Source of the DNA: Paragordius varius
Lineage: Eukaryota > Animalia > Nematomorpha
NCBI GenBank assembly: GCA_964247055.1
Contig: OZ176051.1
Location: 14,384,001-14,448,000 of the forward strand
DNA: 64,000 nt
Direction of reading: 5' to 3'
Positions 2,318-50,844 of the stretch are shown here, in pieces. The number at the start of each line of letters is the position of its first letter. Positions within the stretch are counted from its first letter, which is position 1. The translations under genes were made by a program, and so were the position numbers. The notes under the pieces are model-generated. The model had not been told where the DNA came from, ran no database searches, and saw only the letters and a list, made by a program, of their open reading frames with translations.

Positions 2318-5300
2318 TGATTAGTAGATATTACAATATTGTATCATTGTATTTTTATCTTACATCATATTATTATATTAATCGCGTTTGGCGTTTATTC
2401 GTGCGTCATTATTCGTGGAATACTCATATATAATCGTAGAATAAAAGACATATTCTTACAATTGTGAAGGACATGCATGTTAAAAGTATCATTAATAAAA
2501 AAGTATAAATATCACGAAATTTTTAATAAATTATCATTGTTTTGTATTTTCACCAATTTACATCTTATTTGGCGACAATGGAAAAATTTTTAATCGAATG
2601 ATACGATGACACTTATGATTTTGCCACCTATATCAGATATGTCAAAAGGTTTATGATCTCCAAAAATGTTGATATAAATGATGATAATATCAAAGTACTG
2701 TTTTTGGCTGGAGGTGGTCTTAAAACAATTATTAAGATCGAAACAATGATATTTTATAAATCTATTAATGATGCGCCTTAGTCCTTAATTCATGACTTTC
2801 TTAAACCTTACTCACCTGCCAAGTCTGTCCTCGCTGCAGGTTTGAGTTTGATCGTTTGCGGAGAAATGATAGAGAAACATTCACGGAATTTTTGCAAAGA
2901 GTCAAGAGTGTAGCGGAAAAGGCTGAATTTCAAACAGAGGTGGAGGAGAGAATTAAAGATAGTTTTGTGGCTGGATTAAACTTGCTGCAATCATTGGAAG
3001 TGGATCTTTCACGATTCCCGATGCGAAGTGTGATGAGAAGGCGGTGTCATTAACCACCATTGTCGACATGGCCTTGGCTTAGGAACTTGCAAGGGCCGAT
3101 ATTGCCTCCCATGTGTCGTCAAGCAGTATCCTCAAAATTCAAAAGAATCGGTCGAATGATAATAATAATAATAATTATAAGAGTTATATATGGAATATAA
3201 AAAAAATGATGATGGCAATAATAATAAATGGAAGCGGAGATGTGGGAAATGTGGTAAATCGCATATACCAAAACAATGTCCCGCCGGAAAAATGTGCCAC
3301 ATAATAAAAAAAATCATTTTCAGGCAATGTGTCGCCACAAAAAACAATATAGTGATAATACAAACGCTAATTATAATAAATGGGGCACACAAGCGAACTT
3401 TTGCGCTACGATTAATGGCCAAGCTGTCAGTATGGTTTTTGATACTGGAGCTGCTGCTTCTCTGATTAATAAAAATGTCTGGAATACGTAAGAGCACCGT
3501 TACTAAAAAGTGCTCCTAGATTAACTTCCTACGGAAACAACCCAATCAAACTCTTGGGAAAAACGGTTGTCAATGTAACAATAGGAACTATTACGAAGAA
3601 ATTAGAATGTTTTGTGACGCCTTGGATCATTGGTTGTGGCATGACCTTACCGGAAAACGTGAAAGTTAATCAAATAACATATAATAATAATAAGGAGCAT
3701 GATGATGTATTCAAGCGATTTCCAAAACCCTTTAACGAGAAATTGGGTTGTTACAACGGTGATCCTGTCAAATTGTATGTCCGATCAGATGCAATACCAA
3801 AAGTCTGCGCTGCACGGCGAATTCCATTGGCACTACAGAGTAAAGTAGAGATGGAAATGCAGAGACTGATGGACCTGGGAATAGTGAGTTTCGTTGATCC
3901 TACACAACACTATGTGGAATGGGCGACTCCTACGGTTAACGTCGTAAAAACTAATGGGGAAATTGGGGTGTGCGCTGATTTCCGGGTATCTATCAATTCT
4001 TTGATGAAGAACATATCTTAGATTATCCCGACATTTGACACGATCGCGTTTAAATGTGCGGGATCCACATGGTTCTCGTCCATTGATTTAAAAGACGCAT
4101 ACCTTCAAATTCCGGTGGATGTGGAAAGTAAAAAAATTTTTTACTACCCCGATGGGATATTTCCAATTTAATCGCCTACCATTTGGATTGAAGGTTTCTT
4201 CCATGCTTTTCCAGAGAATAATAGATGAGGCACTCAAAGATTGCAGGGGCACAATGGCTTATCTCGACGATGTTTTGATTGTTGGTAAAACGAAAGATGA
4301 ACATGATAAAAATCTTAGCGAGACTCTAACAAGGTTACAAAAATGCGGGTTTACGTTAAAAAAGGATAATTAAAACTGTATCAGAAGAATATTAAATTTT
4401 TGGGTTTTGAGTTATCAAAACAGGGAATTCGCCCTGTACAAGATAAAATCGACGCCATTACTAAATGTGCAACACCTACCAAAAAACTGAGTTAAGATCA
4501 TTTTTGGGATTGCTCAATTTTTATGAACGTTTTATTCCTGGCTTACATGTCAAAGGTAGTAATCTACATGCACTAACAGGATCCAAAATGGAGATGGTCA
4601 CAAGAACATCAAAATTAATTTAAGCAAGCAAAAAACTTAATATTAAGAGAATCTCTACTTGCCACTTATAACATAAATTATAAAACAATAATACATGTGG
4701 ATGCATCTACAAAAGGCTTTGGAGCTGTACTTCCTCAAATGGAGAATAAGAGAATGGTACCAATTGCATTCGCGACAAGAAAATGCCAGAATGCAGAGAA
4801 AAATTATTCTGTGATTGAATTGGAAACAAAGGCTTTGCTATTTGGTTTAGAAAAATTCCATTATTATATATATGGACAGAAATGTGAGGTCTGGTCAGAT
4901 CATAAGCCGTTAGTTCATTTATTCGGAAACAATCGGAAGTTAAGTGATATTAAAAACTGTAAATTGTTAAGATGGATCTACAAGGCCGCCGCGTATGATT
5001 TTGATATGAAATATATTGCGGGATCGACAAACATGGCCGATGTGTTTTCAAGACTTTTCGAAAAGAGTCAGACACCCTTAGCCAATGATGTGAATATGTG
5101 GCCGAAAAAATTCGACAATCGCATTCGTGGATTTAAATTTAAATAAAAGGCAAATAAAAAAGATTGTTTGGAGGATAAACTGTTAAAACGACTACGTATG
5201 TCAATTAATAATACTGTTTGGTCAACACCGGAATTATCCGCATTCAAAGCCGTTAGAAATGATCTCAAACAAGCCGGTGGTTTCGTATATGTTGGTGATC

Positions 5301-5985
5301 GGTTGGTTACCCCAACAGCTGCGTGATGTTGGCCCGGAATTGATAAGGACATTGAAAAGTTAATACACGACTGTCAGTGTTGTCTGAGGAACAGGGCCAA
5401 CGCTTCTGAGAATCCGGTATATAAGAAGAACATCAACACACCGTTGAATTGATTGCAAGATAAAGAAACGCCTAAAGAAAGTACACCAACGAGACCCTTA
5501 GGAGAATTTACACCTTATCAGTCAATATTTATAAAGAACGAGATATCTAGAGGATGGCGACCGGGTACGGTTGAAGTAAGGACGGTGCCGTTATCGTAGG
5601 AAGTAAAGGATGAAGATGGGAAAGAGATGACGAAACATGCCGATCAACTGAGGTCGGATGGTGAGCAGAGTGAGGCCCCCAGGCGTTACCCAGATCGAGT
5701 CCGCAAACCTCCTAAGCGTTTTTTAAAGGATTAGAGAATGATATGTTGTTGATATTACAACATTGCATCATTGTATTTTTATCTTGCATCATATTATTAT
5801 ATTAATCGCGTTTGGCGTTTATGTTCGTGCATCATTATTCGTGGAATTCTCATTAGAATAAAAGAAATATTCTTACAATTGTGACGCACATGCATGTTAA
5901 AATTATCATTAATTAAAAAGTATAAATATCACGAAATTTTTAATAAATTATCATATTTGTATTTTCACCAATATACATCTTATTT
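2318..5985 (+). mobile_element. Degenerate Ty3/Gypsy LTR retrotransposon (gag-PR-RT-RNaseH, integrase core largely deleted)
   Basis: Direct LTRs at ~2318-2569 and 5739-5985. PBS-like TGGCGAC at 2570 followed by gag ATG at 2578. Zn knuckle CGKCGKSH, protease FDTGAA (3276-3491), RT WATP..V..CADFR and YLDD (3554-4373), RNaseH DAS..G.GAVL and DHKPL (4697-5146). Purine tract AAAGGATTAGAGAA precedes the 3' LTR. Many stops and frameshifts. Confidence 0.9.
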
Positions 5986-6043
5986 TCGGATGGTGAGCAG
6001 AGTGAGGCCCCAGGCGTTACCCAGATCGAGTCCGCAAACCTCC

Positions 6044-8846
6044 AAAAGATTTTTTAAATTAAATCCATGAATGCGATTTGTCGGATTTTTTCGGCCACAT
6101 ATTCACATCATTGGCTAAGAGTGTCTGACTCTTTTCGAAAAGTCTTGAAAACACATCGGCCATGTTTGTCGATCCCGCAATATATTTCATATCAAAATCA
6201 TACGCGGCGGCCTTGTAGATCCATCTTAATTAATATCACTTAACTTCCGATTGTTTCCGAATAAATGAACTAACGGCTTATGATCTGACCAGACCTCACA
6301 TTTCTGTCCATATATATAATAATGGAATTTTTCTAAACCAAATAGCAAAGCCTTTGTTTCCAATTCAATCACAGAATAATTTTTCTCTGCATTCTGGCAT
6401 TTTCTTGTCGCGAATGCAATTGGTACCATTCTCTTATTCTCCATTTGAGGAAGTACAGCTCCAAAGCCTTTTGTAGATGCATCCACATGTATTATTGTTT
6501 TATAATTTATGTTATAAGTGGCAAGTAGAGATTCTCTTAATATTAAGTTTTTTGCTTGCTTAAATTAATTTTGATGTTCTTGTGACCATCTCCATTTTGG
6601 ATCCTGTTAGTGCATGTAGATTACTACCTTTGACATGTAAGCCAGGAATAAAACGTTCATAAAAATTGAGCAATCCCAAAAATGATCTTAACTCAGTTTT
6701 TTGGTAGGTGTTGCACATTTAGTAATGGCGTCGATTTTATCTTGTACAGGGCGAATTCCCTGTTTTGATAACTCAAAACCCAAAAATTTAATATTCTTCT
6801 GATACAGTTTTAATTATCCTTTTTTAACGTAAACCCGCATTTTTGTAACCTTGTTAGAGTCTCGCTAAGATTTTTATCATGTTCATCTTTCGTTTTACCA
6901 ACAATCAAAACATCGTCGAGATAAGCCATTGTGCCCCTGCAATCTTTGAGTGCCTCATCTATTATTCTCTGGAAAAGCATGGAAGAAACCTTCAATCCAA
7001 ATGGTAGGCGATTAAATTGGAAATATCCCATCGGGGTAGTAAAAAATTTTTTTACTTTCCACATCCACCGGAATTTGAAGGTATGCGTCTTTTAAATCAA
7101 TGGACGAGAACCATGTGGATCCCGCACATTTAAACGCGATCGTGTCAAATGTCGGGATAATCTAAGATATGTTCTTCATCAAAGAATTGATAGATACCCG
7201 GAAATCAGCGCACACCCCAATTTCCCCATTAGTTTTTACGACGTTAACCGTAGGAGTCGCCCATTCCACATAGTGTTGTGTAGGATCAACGAAACTCACT
7301 ATTCCCAGGTCCATCAGTCTCTGCATTTCCATCTCTACTTTACTCTGTAGTGCCAATGGAATTCGCCGTGCAGCGCAGACTTTTGGTATTGCATCTGATC
7401 GGACATACAATTTGACAGGATCACCGTTGTAACAACCCAATTTCTCGTTAAAGGGTTTTGGAAATCGCTTGAATACATCATCATGCTCCTTATTATTATT
7501 ATATGTTATTTGATTAACTTTCACGTTTTCCGGTAAGGTCATGCCACAACCAATGATCCAAGGCGTCACAAAACATTCTAATTTCTTCGTAATAGTTCCT
7601 ATTGTTACATTGACAACCGTTTTTCCCAAGAGTTTGATTGGGTTGTTTCCGTAGGAAGTTAATCTAGGAGCACTTTTTAGTAACGGTGCTCTTACGTATT
7701 CCAGACATTTTTATTAATCAGAGAAGCAGCAGCTCCAGTATCAAAAACCATACTGACAGCTTGGCCATTAATCGTAGCGCAAAAGTTCGCTTGTGTGCCC
7801 CATTTATTATAATTAGCGTTTGTATTATCACTATATTGTTTTTTGTGGCGACACATTGCCTGAAAATGATTTTTTTTATTATGTGGCACATTTTTCCGGC
7901 GGGACATTGTTTTGGTATATGCGATTTACCACATTTCCCACATCTCCGCTTCCATTTATTATTATTGCCATCATCATTTTTTTTATATTCCATATATAAC
8001 TCTTATAATTATTATTATTATTATCATTCGACCGATTCTTTTGAATTTTGAGGATACTGCTTGACGACACATGGGAGGCAATATCGGCCCTTGCAAGTTC
8101 CTAAGCCAAGGCCATGTCGACAATGGTGGTTAATGACACCGCCTTCTCATCACACTTCGCATCGGGAATCGTGAAAGATCCACTTCCAATGATTGCAAGT
8201 TAATTCAGCCACAAAACTGTCTTTAATTCTCTCCTCCACCTCTGTTTGAAATTCAGCCTTTTCCGCCACACTCTTGACTCTTTGCAAAAATTCCGTGAAT
8301 GTTTCTCTATCATTTCTCCGCAAACGATCAAACTCAAACCTGCAGCGAAGACAGACTTGGCAGGTGAGTAAGGTTTAAGAAAGTCATGAATTAAGGACCA
8401 AGGCGCATCATTAATAGATTTATAAAATATCATTGTTTCGATCTTATTAATTGTTTTAAGACCAGCTCCAGCCAAAAACAGTAGCTTGATATTATCATCA
8501 TTAGTATCAATTTGTGATCATAACCCTTTTGACAATCTGATGTAGGTGGAATCAAAAGTGTCATCGTATCCTTCAATTGAAATTTTATCCCCCATGGTCC
8601 CCAGATATAGAATATATCGTCAAATTAAAATAATGTCAATTTATTAAAATTGTTGTGATATTTATACTTTTTATTAGTTATAATTTAAACATGAATGCGT
8701 CGCAAGAATACTTTTATAGTACGAATATTTAAAGAATTCCACGAATAATGACGCACGAACATAAACGCCAAACGCGATTATAATAATAATATGATGTAAT
8801 ATAAAAAGACAATCATGCAATGTTGTGTCATATCAACTACATATCA
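6044..8846 (-). mobile_element. Inverted second copy of the same Gypsy element (LTR-gag-PR-RT-RNaseH)
   Basis: ORF-track translations mirror those of 3113-4945 with a constant coordinate sum of 11183 (3554+7629, 4119+7064, 4697+6486). Inverted LTR at ~8610-8846. Confidence 0.92.
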
Positions 8847-18056: not shown

Positions 18057-18685
18057 CAGGTTATTTTTTATGTAGGAATTATACTTATCACTTGGATTCT
18101 AATTGGGTATCGAATACCCTGGACATATTTAAGTTGATATTATTAAAAAACTCCTGAAAAAAACAATTTTGCTCATATCCTTATAAAAAATATATAAATA
18201 AGCCAAAGTTTTGGGAACAAAGTTCCGCAAACTACAGGGACGCTATTTTTATTTGACATCATTTTACAAAATATCGTGTATATTTGATTTTGAGCCCAAA
18301 ACTAATTTTAAATTTGTATAGTCACATTTAACCTTTATCAGAAAAAGTGGTATATTTTACATTATGTATTTAGCTTATGCAGACATATCCTGTTAGCCAA
18401 AATTTACCTTTAGGTTGTACCTCTAAATAAGTAATAACAAGTATTTTTAATTTTTTGCTTTATATTTCGGTACATTAACCATGGTTTCGATTTATTCTAT
18501 ATTTTTTAGAAAATAAATTTAAACAAGCCTGGCCAAAAATCGAAATTATTATTAGTTTTCGCTCTATTCTTAATTATAGCATATGATAGATTCAACATAT
18601 ATTTTCGTATTTGATAAAATAAAAATTAATTGACAAAAAAGGGCTATTATACAGTGATACAAAAATTGAGCTGATGAAATATATA

Positions 18686-20391
18686 TGTTAATTGGTTATA
18701 ACCTTAAGTTATATTATTATTATTTATTATATAATTTATATGACATTGTATGTACAAGTATTCTAATTATAGTTGCCAACTTTATAACCTTAAGTTAAAT
18801 TATACGACATTGTATTTAATAAGTAATCTAATGACTATTATATATATGGATATTTTATATGACATTGTATTTGATACAAATAGTATTCTAATTTATTATT
18901 GTAATTTATCCTTGCTAAAATATATAAATACACCTATACCAACACTGAGCAATCAGTTAATAAATGTACTTAATTTGAGTTATTAATTCATATGTCGTCT
19001 CTATTCTAAACACATTATTTGGTAAATTTAAAGCAAATGCACGGATCCAAGGGAGACCAAAAATTAATGGCCGATCTCCCTCGGTTACAAAACATTCAAG
19101 GGTTTTTGTCATACCGTTCATTGTTACGCGCAATTCGGTTTTACCCATGGTCGGGATAGTTTCATTATTGTATGTGGATAGTCTTTGTCCTACCTCCAGT
19201 CGTGGTTGTCCTGTTGATTTCCAGCATCTCTCATTGATAACTGTCACATCCGCACCGGTGTCAAACAACATTGATGTTTCTATTCCGTTAAGTTGCACTG
19301 TTATCGTTGGGCCCATCCCCGTTGAATTTGTCACTGCCCGAATACCTGGTTTGGTGGGATATTTGGTTCGGCAATACTTTGCAAAATGGTTGTATTTTCC
19401 GCACTTATAGCATCGTTGACCCTTTGCACTGCATTTATCGATTGCATGACATTTCCCACATCTTTGGCAGTCTCTTTGGTGTATGGTTCTTTCTTGGCGG
19501 ATTTTCAGCACCTTCGGTTCAATCACTTCGAGGGAATGCGCCATATCAATTACCATTTGTAGTGACACTGGTTCGCCTTCATTTTGACCCGTGGGGAATC
19601 TTATATGTAATTCCCGTTCTAGGATTGGCATATTTAGTCCTATCAAGAAAATATCTCTTAATAAGTATGAGATATTGCCTTCAAAATCACAATCGTCAGC
19701 TAGTACTTTTAATCTTTCCATATAACTCATGATTGGTTCGCCTTCTTGTCTGGTTGTTTTAAAGAATTCTTTACGACTCAGCCATATGCTTTTGTCCGGG
19801 GCAAAGATTTGCATTGCCAATTTTTGAATTTGAGCCCATGTCATCTCCTCTATTTTCGTAGGAAACGCTTGGTTTTCCAGTTTAGAGATTGTGCGTAGTC
19901 CTGCATAGGCCAGGAATAAGTTTTTTAATATTTCATCATTTGGATTAATGTTTTTAGCGATTAGATACGATTCACGTGCTTTAAGTATTGTTTAAAATTA
20001 GTGTTTGGATCGTATTCGTTAATACTGATTTTGGAAATTTCGTCCATTAACGGCACCAATAATGTGTTTAGGATAGAGACGACATATGAATTAATAACTC
20101 AAATTAAGTACATTTATTAACTGATTGCTCAGTGTTGGTATAGGTGTATTTATATATTTTAGCAAGGATAAATTACAATAATAAATTAGAATACTATTTG
20201 TATCAAATACAATGTCATATAAAATATCCATATATATAATAGTCATTAGATTACTTATTAAATACAATGTCGTATAATTTAACTTAAGGTTATAAAGTTG
20301 GCAACTATAATTAGAATACTTGTACATACAATGTCATATAAATTATATAATAAATAATAATAATATAACTTAAGGTTATAACCAATTAACA
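18686..20391 (-). mobile_element. Gypsy-derived Gag-protease element bounded by inverted 327-bp LTRs
   Basis: 18686-19012 and 20065-20391 are near-perfect reverse complements (TGTT...AACA, with TATA-like and AATAAA motifs). PBS TGGTGCCG at 20058-20051. Flanks ATATA|TG...CA|ATATA. No RT, integrase or recombinase. Confidence 0.9.
18957..20047 (-). CDS. Retrotransposon Gag plus aspartic protease (one -1 frameshift near 19980)
   Basis: ATG at 20047 (MDEISKISINEYDP) directly after the PBS. ORF 18957-19844 has RQEGEPIMSY.ERLK.LA..C.F, zinc knuckles CQRCGKCH and CYKCGKYNHFAKYC, protease LFDTGADVT and LIFGLPWIRAF, then runs into the inverted LTR. Confidence 0.88.
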
Positions 20392-21615
20392 ATATATATA
20401 TTTATAATGATCTGATAGGAAAATCTATCAGGAATGATGCTTTTGGTTTTGGTCATTACGATTTATTTAAAATTATTTAAACTTTTGTGGTAGGAGCATA
20501 TCAAAAAATAGCAAACCTACTTCCTAGATAATTTTTTTTGGAGAAAGCTAGAGGCTCACCAAAAAATATGACTAAAATATATCATAAAATACATGTAAAA
20601 AACCAATATTTTCAAAAAATTTTAATTTTTATATATGTGCGAAAGTCACAAGTTTTTACGCTCTTTTAAACTGGACTAACCTCTTAAATAAAGGCAAAAA
20701 TTTAGCATCAACAAATTATTTAAAAAAGTATTTTATTATATCTTAAAGCCTTTTTAAACCGTTTCATCATGCCTCAAAAGAGTATGAAGTACATTCAACA
20801 AAATTTTTCTAAAAATTAAATTTTTGAAAAAGGTATGCATTTTGTTAAAAATATTTTAATTGAATCAAAATTTTGCATATCTTAAAAATTTTTATGACGC
20901 CTGTCCGGCGTTTTTTCGTTTAATTTTAGAGGACAAGACCATTTTAAAGGGTAATAAATTTGGGAATTTCGGAGCCCACATCTAAAAATAAAAATATTTA
21001 AAAATATTATTTTGCTTTTCATATGTTGTATAATATATTTTAGTGATATTTTTTGGAATGAGGCATTTAACTTTTATAAAAATTTTACAAAATGTGCTCA
21101 AATTTGGCCATTTTCTAAACGGAGCCCCACCTACCACAAAAGTGTAAATAACTTTCTTAAATCAATAAAGACCAAAACCAAAAACACCGTGAAACTCCTA
21201 ATTCATTTACCTATCAGAATATATATCAGGTTATTTTTTTATACCCCCCGATTTCGGACGCAGTTTTATAATAAGGACTTAGTTTTAATATAATTCTTAA
21301 TGTACGATCAATTTTTATGACTTGCATTGGCTCAATTGCAAAAATATGGATTTATTATAAAATCAAAAGGATCCATCGAGCTTAATTAATGATTTAAAAC
21401 TCTAAAACTTGATCAAATGGCCAAAATAAACGTTAACTCTAATATGTGATCGAATATATAATAATTAGAATTTATTGTCGAAATATTAGACATATTGATT
21501 ATACGATAGATTTGTATTTAATAAATTGATATTAAAAGTTTTTTCGCACTTCTCTTCCCAACTACATTTTATTGATCAAAAATAACATAATAAATTGGAT
21601 TAAAGTTTTTTATTT

Positions 21616-49579: not shown

Positions 49580-50844
49580 CTCTAAACTTATCAATAACTC
49601 GAGAGTTAATTAATTGAATACTCGTTGTGGCAAAGCTTGAGTAGGATAATTTAATTATTGATGATATACCATCTTCACTTCAAGTCTGTCCGTGAACACT
49701 AGTTGGTCTTTGGGCAAAGTCGATCCTTAAACATTTCAAGTTGATCCTTAAACATTTCAAGGTCCTTAAACACTTTAAGTTGGTCCTTTGACTTTTTTGT
49801 TTTGTTTTTGATTAGTATATATTTAATCGTATATCAGCCATCTATTTTATCGTTTTTAACCTATTTTCTATTATTTATATAAATCACTATCAAACTTTTA
49901 TCATTAAGAAACGGTATATCTTTATTAATTTTTTAAAATTATTTCGTTATAAAATTTTAACCCCTAATTTAAAAAATATATGAGTTTTCTGGGTTACTAT
50001 TTATCAACACATTTAAAAGTTAATAATTTTGTTAAATTAGAAAAAATTAATTAAAAATAAAAAAGTGGTTTTTGAATAAAATAATTTTTATTTTTAAATG
50101 TATAAATATATAATAAATAAAGAAAATTAGGTTAAAAATAAAAAAATAAATGCATAAATTATGGTTAAAAAAACATTTACAAACCAAATTGAAATGTTCA
50201 AGGACCAATGAAGTCAAGGACACTCTTGATGTGCAAATGGATATTAAGTTTCACAATTATTTTTGCACAGTTAAACCTCTATAATTTTATTAAATTTAAA
50301 TTGGTTCATAGCTGTCAACCTATATTATTTGTGCCTACGTGATGGTTAATTTTAAACATAATTCTGGCCTTGGGCCAAAAGTGTTTACCCAAGTATACAA
50401 GTTAATTTTACATATTATTGTTAATCAATATTTACATTGGCCCTTTATACTATCATTTTGGATAGAAAAAGTACAATTTTTAATATAAGATGTGTAATAT
50501 AACATTATCATGTTCCACAAAAAAATATTAAAACATCGTACTTTTTAAAAATTTTTTGGTATGATTATCTGCAAATATAAGCTGTGTCCACAAATAATTA
50601 ACCTGTTAAGATACATTCTTATAGATAAATGTATTTGCATTATCATGGTGCTTTCGGCCCTTACTTGTGAAAAAGAAAGTTATTTACATTTTTGTGGTAA
50701 GGGCTTCATATCAAAAAATGGTGAAATTTTCGCACATCTTTAGAAAATAATTTATTATTAACGCTAAATGCTCCGCTAAATCATAAACTACTTATAAAAA
50801 GCAAAACAATATTTTAAAACTGTTTTAATTTTCAGACGTGGCCA

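Follow-up and report, generated by a model that had tools for sequence, protein, structure and literature searches.

The hairworm Paragordius varius carries in its genome a Ty3/gypsy insertion in which one of the two LTRs is inverted and both outer ends are U3 ends. This well-preserved insertion is a one-off accident that does not define a new class of mobile elements, and it has no evident function. It is probably the single, dead insertion of an aberrant cDNA, in which a mis-primed DNA end with the LTR in sense orientation would have led to a product with two U3 termini that was then inserted by integrase. The element lies in a 64,000-nucleotide stretch of contig OZ176051.1 (positions 14,384,001 to 14,448,000), here called the window, and all positions given below without further qualification are those of the window.

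The element occupies 1706 bp (18686-20391) and is bounded by two inverted arms of 334 nt each, 18686-19019 and 20058-20391, with 1038 nt in between (Table 1). The arms are identical at 333 of 334 positions, the sole mismatch, on the sense strand, being T at 19005 versus C at 20072. The LTR ends were defined by the normal copies of the family, in which the LTR measures 332 nt; by this definition, the inverted LTR ends at 19017, the two bases that follow it (TT, 19018-19019) are the spacer base and the first base of the PBS, and both outer ends of the element, TGTTAATTGG and CCAATTAACA, are exact U3 tips, each adjoined by ATATA. Between the arms, the minus strand contains the PBS, the C-terminal part of gag with two zinc knuckles and an aspartyl protease with its DTG motif; the Pfam domains found in this coding sequence are PF13975, PF13650, PF00077 and PF03732. 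This anatomy, read directly from the assembly, agrees with a preliminary description of the locus as an LTR-PBS-gag-PR start on the minus strand that is capped by a near-identical inverted LTR and has two U3 ends. The same description had the inverted copy stop within the first PBS bases, which holds for 19018-19019 but not for the TGGT that comes next, which is native antisense protease sequence.

From the U3 tip at 20391, the element is collinear with full-length siblings as far as 19011, approximately element position 1380 and the end of the protease, beyond which the inverted LTR begins. Compared with the sibling L031, with which it is collinear over the first 1380 nt, it keeps only gag-PR, and it has neither a PPT nor a sense-oriented 3' R. 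Apart from one allele that is shared by the two arms and is discussed below, the window copy differs from ten close siblings in only three places over 1372 nt: the C at 20072 that only one arm has, the loss of 1 nt near 19964, private to this copy, by which gag is frameshifted, and an A at 19652 that is also found in the divergent copy L029.

Table 1. Features of the inverted-LTR insertion and its immediate surroundings, in window coordinates
Feature	Position	Strand	Remarks
Putative 5-bp target-site duplication (TSD), left copy (ATATA)	18681..18685		In a (TA)n tract; family TSD 5 bp; (TA)n run also at the paralogous site
Inverted LTR copy, 332 nt, U3 tip outermost	18686..19017	+ (sense)	One base different from the LTRs of sibling L031, namely the A common to both arms
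Longest ORF (295 aa), which covers the C-terminal gag part with two zinc knuckles and the protease and continues for about 20 codons in the inverted LTR	18957..19844	-	
Junction microhomology: 8 nt common to the U5/PBS boundary and antisense protease	19011..19019		T at 19019 fits the LTR/PBS side only
Aspartyl protease domain; junction cuts just past its C-terminal end	19047..19304	-	PF13975/PF13650/PF00077 on residues 181-266 of the 19020-19844 translation
Internal region, collinear with sibling positions ~343-1372	19020..20049	-	Private 1-nt deletion near 19964 shifts the frame of the gag N-terminal part
PBS, 9 nt complementary to the 3' end of tRNA-His(GTG)	20050..20058	-	1-nt spacer at 20059
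Regular 5' LTR, 332 nt	20060..20391	-	
Putative 5-bp TSD, right copy (ATATA)	20392..20396		

The family to which the element belongs is an ordinary Ty3/gypsy (Metaviridae) family of about 4.48 kb, organized as gag-PR-RT-RNaseH-IN, whose normal copies have direct LTRs of 332 bp, a primer site for tRNA-His and TSDs of 5 bp. In the sibling L031, the domains follow each other in the order PF13975, PF00078, PF17917/PF17919, PF17921 and PF00665 (PR, RT, RNase H, integrase zinc domain and integrase core). The LTR of the normal copies, for example L031-L037, starts with TGTT and ends with ATTA, not with the usual CA, and a purine run precedes the 3' LTR. Family copies were compared as they stand in the assembly, and many of their LTRs are 97-100% identical. 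The TSD measures 5 bp in each of seven normal copies, one of them imperfect, with unrelated target sequences, and there is no preference for TA at the target sites of the family (at least 12 other sites, including further 3' flanks). The canonical PBS starts one base past the LTR and matches tRNA-His over only 9 nt, a match short enough that it would weaken the normal second jump. A 12-mer of the canonical PBS matched no tRNA gene; the longer version found in the aberrant sibling L035, described below, led to two tRNA-His genes (L083 and L084) whose ends are complementary to the PBS, identifying the primer as tRNA-His(GTG).

The inverted arrangement was found once. A search of the 110-Mb assembly with the LTR arm listed 41 matches, with 40 of 70 candidates scored; most of these matches form direct-orientation LTR pairs about 4.14 kb apart, and among the matches listed no pair but the window copy is inverted. 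In a BLAST-type search of the assembly, a 101-nt junction probe had a full-length match only to itself, the other copies matching either the LTR half or the internal half, and a degenerate junction pattern with up to two mismatches found no locus besides the window in the 110-Mb assembly. The genome-wide count of orientations that the preliminary description had proposed therefore stands at one inverted pair, with a unique junction, versus at least 12 normal direct-LTR copies. That description had envisaged a TIR-like non-autonomous class if the structure was multicopy and a one-off accident if the genome held a single copy. A new multicopy class is ruled out by searches of the whole assembly with the LTR, the junction and the degenerate pattern, which gave one copy, and the accident is what is left. 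It is also extremely improbable that the element founded, or belongs to, a TIR-like non-autonomous retroelement class that propagates: two U3 tips competent for integrase and an apparent TSD would suit such a class, but there is a single copy with a junction unique in 110 Mb, gag is broken by the private frameshift, and because both the PPT and a sense-oriented 3' R are missing, standard strand transfers could not copy it.

The junction itself retains information on how the two parts were joined. It falls within 8-9 nt that are the same at the U5/PBS boundary and in antisense protease, so that the joining of the inverted copy to the protease 3' region by microhomology, already noted in the preliminary description, is confirmed. 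The base at 19019 is T, which is the base that follows in the LTR-spacer-PBS context, and all siblings retrieved for comparison have C at the corresponding protease position. Had the LTR-sense strand acted as primer, a base from the LTR/PBS side would be expected here. The simplest explanation has this strand stopping exactly one base inside the PBS, pairing over 8 nt and being extended from its mismatched last base while keeping its own bases; alternatively, the T could be due to a later C-to-T change. Within the same frame, the nascent plus strand might have folded back onto its own U5/PBS boundary, in which case the base at 19019 would be expected to be C, and one substitution would have to have followed. 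An autointegration product was considered and rejected, as the junction is not at a processed LTR tip but 2 nt past the LTR end, within the 8-9-nt homology.

Both arms have A seven bases from the LTR end, a position at which 18 other young LTRs have G; older, divergent LTRs of the family also carry the A. Probably the parent element already had this base in its U5, as an inherited allele or one derived from a CpG; it could alternatively represent a CpG transition that spread between the arms by gene conversion. Its interpretation as a signature of heteroduplex repair is weakened by the older LTRs, given which an inherited allele is possible. The presence in both arms of an allele that is absent from the other young LTRs would be expected from one round of cDNA synthesis, not from two independent insertions. 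A primer that ends at the junction and carries the shared A has its closest antisense match in the entire 4.48-kb element at the protease site; with the usual G in its place, two other sites match better than the protease site.

For about 1 kb in either direction, the flanks of the element match one other locus, L068 (C2, ~13.20 Mb), at about 86-89% identity. L068 is the only locus with both flanks and, being a paralog and not a true empty allele, can serve only as a proxy for the empty site. There, the flanks are joined by a (TA)n run that is interrupted only by an unrelated 788-bp foldback element, which suggests that no host DNA was lost at the window site and that the target was a short (TA)n run of about 15 bp. 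The base next to the U3 tip is A on both sides, which points to a direct duplication of odd length and not to the complement that would be left by fold-back copying of a flank. Insertion as one unit, as put forward in the preliminary description, is favoured by the exact tips, the flanks that are contiguous at the paralog, the phase, which matches the 5-bp TSD of the family, and the allele shared by the arms; the (TA)n context fits a duplication of 1, 3, 5 or 7 bp alike, so that its length is not directly readable in this tract. The foldback-type element at the paralog (positions 1016-1803 of L068, reverse complement, in the (TA)n run) has long inverted ends of tandem 21-nt units, and a copy that is about 76% identical to it is present in the window at 49676-50229. 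The right flank of the insertion (20392-20700 and 21130-21186) is a highly repeated element of about 310 bp, with more than 1300 candidate matches in the genome; its inverted arms are at 20438-20494 and 21130-21186, and it begins at or near the insertion site.

These features could be explained as follows. A strand with the LTR in sense orientation would have ended two bases past the LTR, after the spacer and the first PBS base. Such an end is expected for plus-strand strong-stop DNA that is made after the removal of the tRNA-His primer, when only the terminal A of the tRNA can be copied. Removal of the primer tRNA by the RNase H of HIV-1 leaves one ribonucleotide, and removal of this kind is putative for the present family. 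The LTR-sense DNA end was probably plus-strand strong-stop DNA without the tRNA copy. Shortened in this way, the strand would have been unable to make the PBS-guided second jump and would instead have paired over 8 nt with the one site of good complementarity, which lies in the 3' region of the protease, on a plus-sense template that may have been a co-packaged RNA or a displaced plus strand. Extension would then have proceeded back through gag, the PBS and the 5' LTR to the 5' end of the template, and completion to double-stranded linear DNA would have given a molecule with a mirror-oriented LTR at each end and two U3 tips, which integrase would have inserted into the (TA)n tract with the usual 5-bp duplication of the family. 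The identities of the primer strand and of the template are inferred, and insertion by integrase is suggested by the U3 tips, the phase of the flanks and the paralogous site. Retroviral integrases accept donors with two identical ends in vitro; on the use of two U3 ends by integrase, the literature searched contained nothing citable. The mis-priming of plus-strand strong-stop DNA on a sense strand, which the preliminary description had suggested, fits the junction to the base, and an aberrant plus-strand transfer is seen independently in another copy of the family.

This copy, L035 (G000:C2:14487660-14491060), is located at a distance of about 84 kb; its LTRs are direct, its 5-bp TSD is intact, and element positions 343-2020 are missing from it. 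The junction is about 40 nt inside the 5' LTR end and contains a full 18-nt copy of the tRNA-His 3' end, which is present in no canonical copy. This tRNA copy joins an internal site 1.68 kb downstream, with a match of 7-8 nt (8 of 9 positions in the last 9 nt), and the mismatched junction base is the one from the tRNA side, that is, the primer side. This is the textbook signature of plus-strand strong-stop DNA that landed on the wrong site, here in direct orientation, and the fusion shows independently that the second strand transfer does go wrong in the family of the window element. The 9-nt PBS is a plausible reason for these failed transfers. One more sibling, L034 (G000:C5:9959810-9964070), has an intact TSD, direct LTRs and an internal deletion of 815 bp (element positions ~1422-2237), the junction of which showed no clear microhomology.

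Other histories that could have led to the same structure have to be judged against the junction, the shared allele and the flanks. It is unlikely that a normal full-length insertion later suffered a double-strand break in pol that was repaired by fold-back or microhomology-mediated template switching, with the 5' LTR copied in reverse and rejoined in the (TA)n flank. A microhomology of 8-9 nt is typical of such repair, the self-complementary (TA)n tract could conceal a second junction, and a second, larger gypsy palindrome lies 10 kb away within the window. Fold-back copying would, however, put the complement of the right flank beside the left arm, where the A next to both tips is found instead; copying would also need to stop exactly at the U3 tip, and neither the T at 19019 nor the A shared by the arms is predicted by it.

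Two independent head-to-head insertions, followed by a deletion from the PBS edge of one to the protease of the other, are a highly improbable origin. The family is young and looks active, judging from its many near-identical LTRs, and a microhomology deletion could yield the observed junction. Against this, the flanks are contiguous at the paralog, which would place both insertions in the same (TA)n run of about 15 bp, and because the family shows no TA preference at its other target sites, two hits in one such tract would be very unlikely; nor would one expect an allele common to both arms that is absent from 18 other LTRs. There is, finally, very little chance of an assembly artefact, for example a chimeric or fold-back read. 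Palindromic artefacts are known in long-read data, but the structure is not a simple fold-back: a unique spacer of 1038 nt separates the arms, the LTR tips are exact, the junction shows microhomology, one mismatch is specific to one arm, and the flanks are ordinary and both match the paralogous locus.

In comparison with known systems, the window element is probably an aberrant reverse-transcription product of a known type, of which the inverted LTR and the two U3 ends are a new variation. Complex LTR-retrotransposon insertions that arose through template switching by reverse transcriptase, and that have a TSD, have been described in the Triticeae (Sabot and Schulman 2007, PMC1950507) and in rice (bioRxiv 10.1101/452573). 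With the origin proposed here, the window element would resemble them in having an abnormal architecture that is made extrachromosomally, during reverse transcription, and integrated as a unit with a TSD; it differs from them in having one LTR inverted and U3 at both ends. The terms 'inverted' and 'opposite orientation' are absent from the main text of both reports, as is 'palindrom' from that of the latter. In the literature searched, "inverted LTRs" refers almost only to DIRS, and no other integrated LTR element with inverted LTRs is described; an integrated gypsy copy with two U3 ends has no precedent there either, which is not proof of absence. DIRS elements are, like the window element, retroelements bounded by inverted repeats (PMC7192593, PMC3950715), but they rely on a tyrosine recombinase, contain an internal complementary region and produce no TSD, whereas the family of the window element has a DDE integrase and, in normal copies, direct LTRs. 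Membership in DIRS was rejected on the basis of the Integrase_H2C2 and rve domains and the 5-bp TSDs of the siblings. With TRIM and LARD elements, the window element shares a short length, the lack of RT and IN, and derivation from LTR retrotransposons; those elements, however, are multicopy and have direct LTRs with a PBS and a PPT, in contrast to the single copy, inverted LTR and missing PPT seen here, and such an assignment was rejected because no further copies share the internal structure and the junction.

The closest analogue in logic belongs to the non-LTR retrotransposons, namely the 5' inversion of L1 by twin priming that Ostertag and Kazazian reportedly described in 2001: this is a one-step product with an inverted segment, junction microhomology and an intact TSD, and a dead end, as the window element would be under the proposed mechanism. 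L1 twin-priming inversion is also mentioned in PMC2837659. Twin priming is target-primed at the chromosome, whereas the miscopying of the window element would have occurred in the particle, followed by insertion through a DDE integrase. A different kind of likeness is offered by Mu killer, an inverted partial transposon duplication that is said (by Slotkin et al., in 2005) to silence its family via a hairpin RNA. The window element is likewise an inverted duplication of the terminal region of an active transposon, and, if transcribed, it would fold into a long hairpin; a silencing role for it is pure conjecture.

If it arose as proposed, the element would preserve in nature a record of two events that as a rule are observed only in vitro, plus-strand strong-stop DNA missing its proper landing site and integrase accepting a substrate with two U3 ends. 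The junction, resolved to the base, and L035, which shows the same class of error in direct orientation, together provide a testable picture of how a short primer site might make a family error-prone. More broadly, it is conceivable, though rather doubtful, that the gypsy elements of this genome repeatedly make two-U3 cDNAs and that inverted-LTR insertions serve as hairpin templates that feed RNA silencing of the active parent family. The idea of recurrence is prompted by the mis-transfer in L035 and by the second gypsy palindrome in the window; should such cDNAs be recurrent, the likely cause would be primer sites so short (9 nt here) that the plus-strand jump cannot be relied on. The second palindrome spans 2318-8846 and is part of another gypsy family, which has only about 40-45% amino-acid identity to the family of the window element. 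Its arms at 2986-4953 and 6230-8197 are 100% complementary and its outer arms are more diverged; its layout is more complex, with a direct LTR pair (at about 2324 and 5748) and a 51-nt repeat on either side of the inner LTR.
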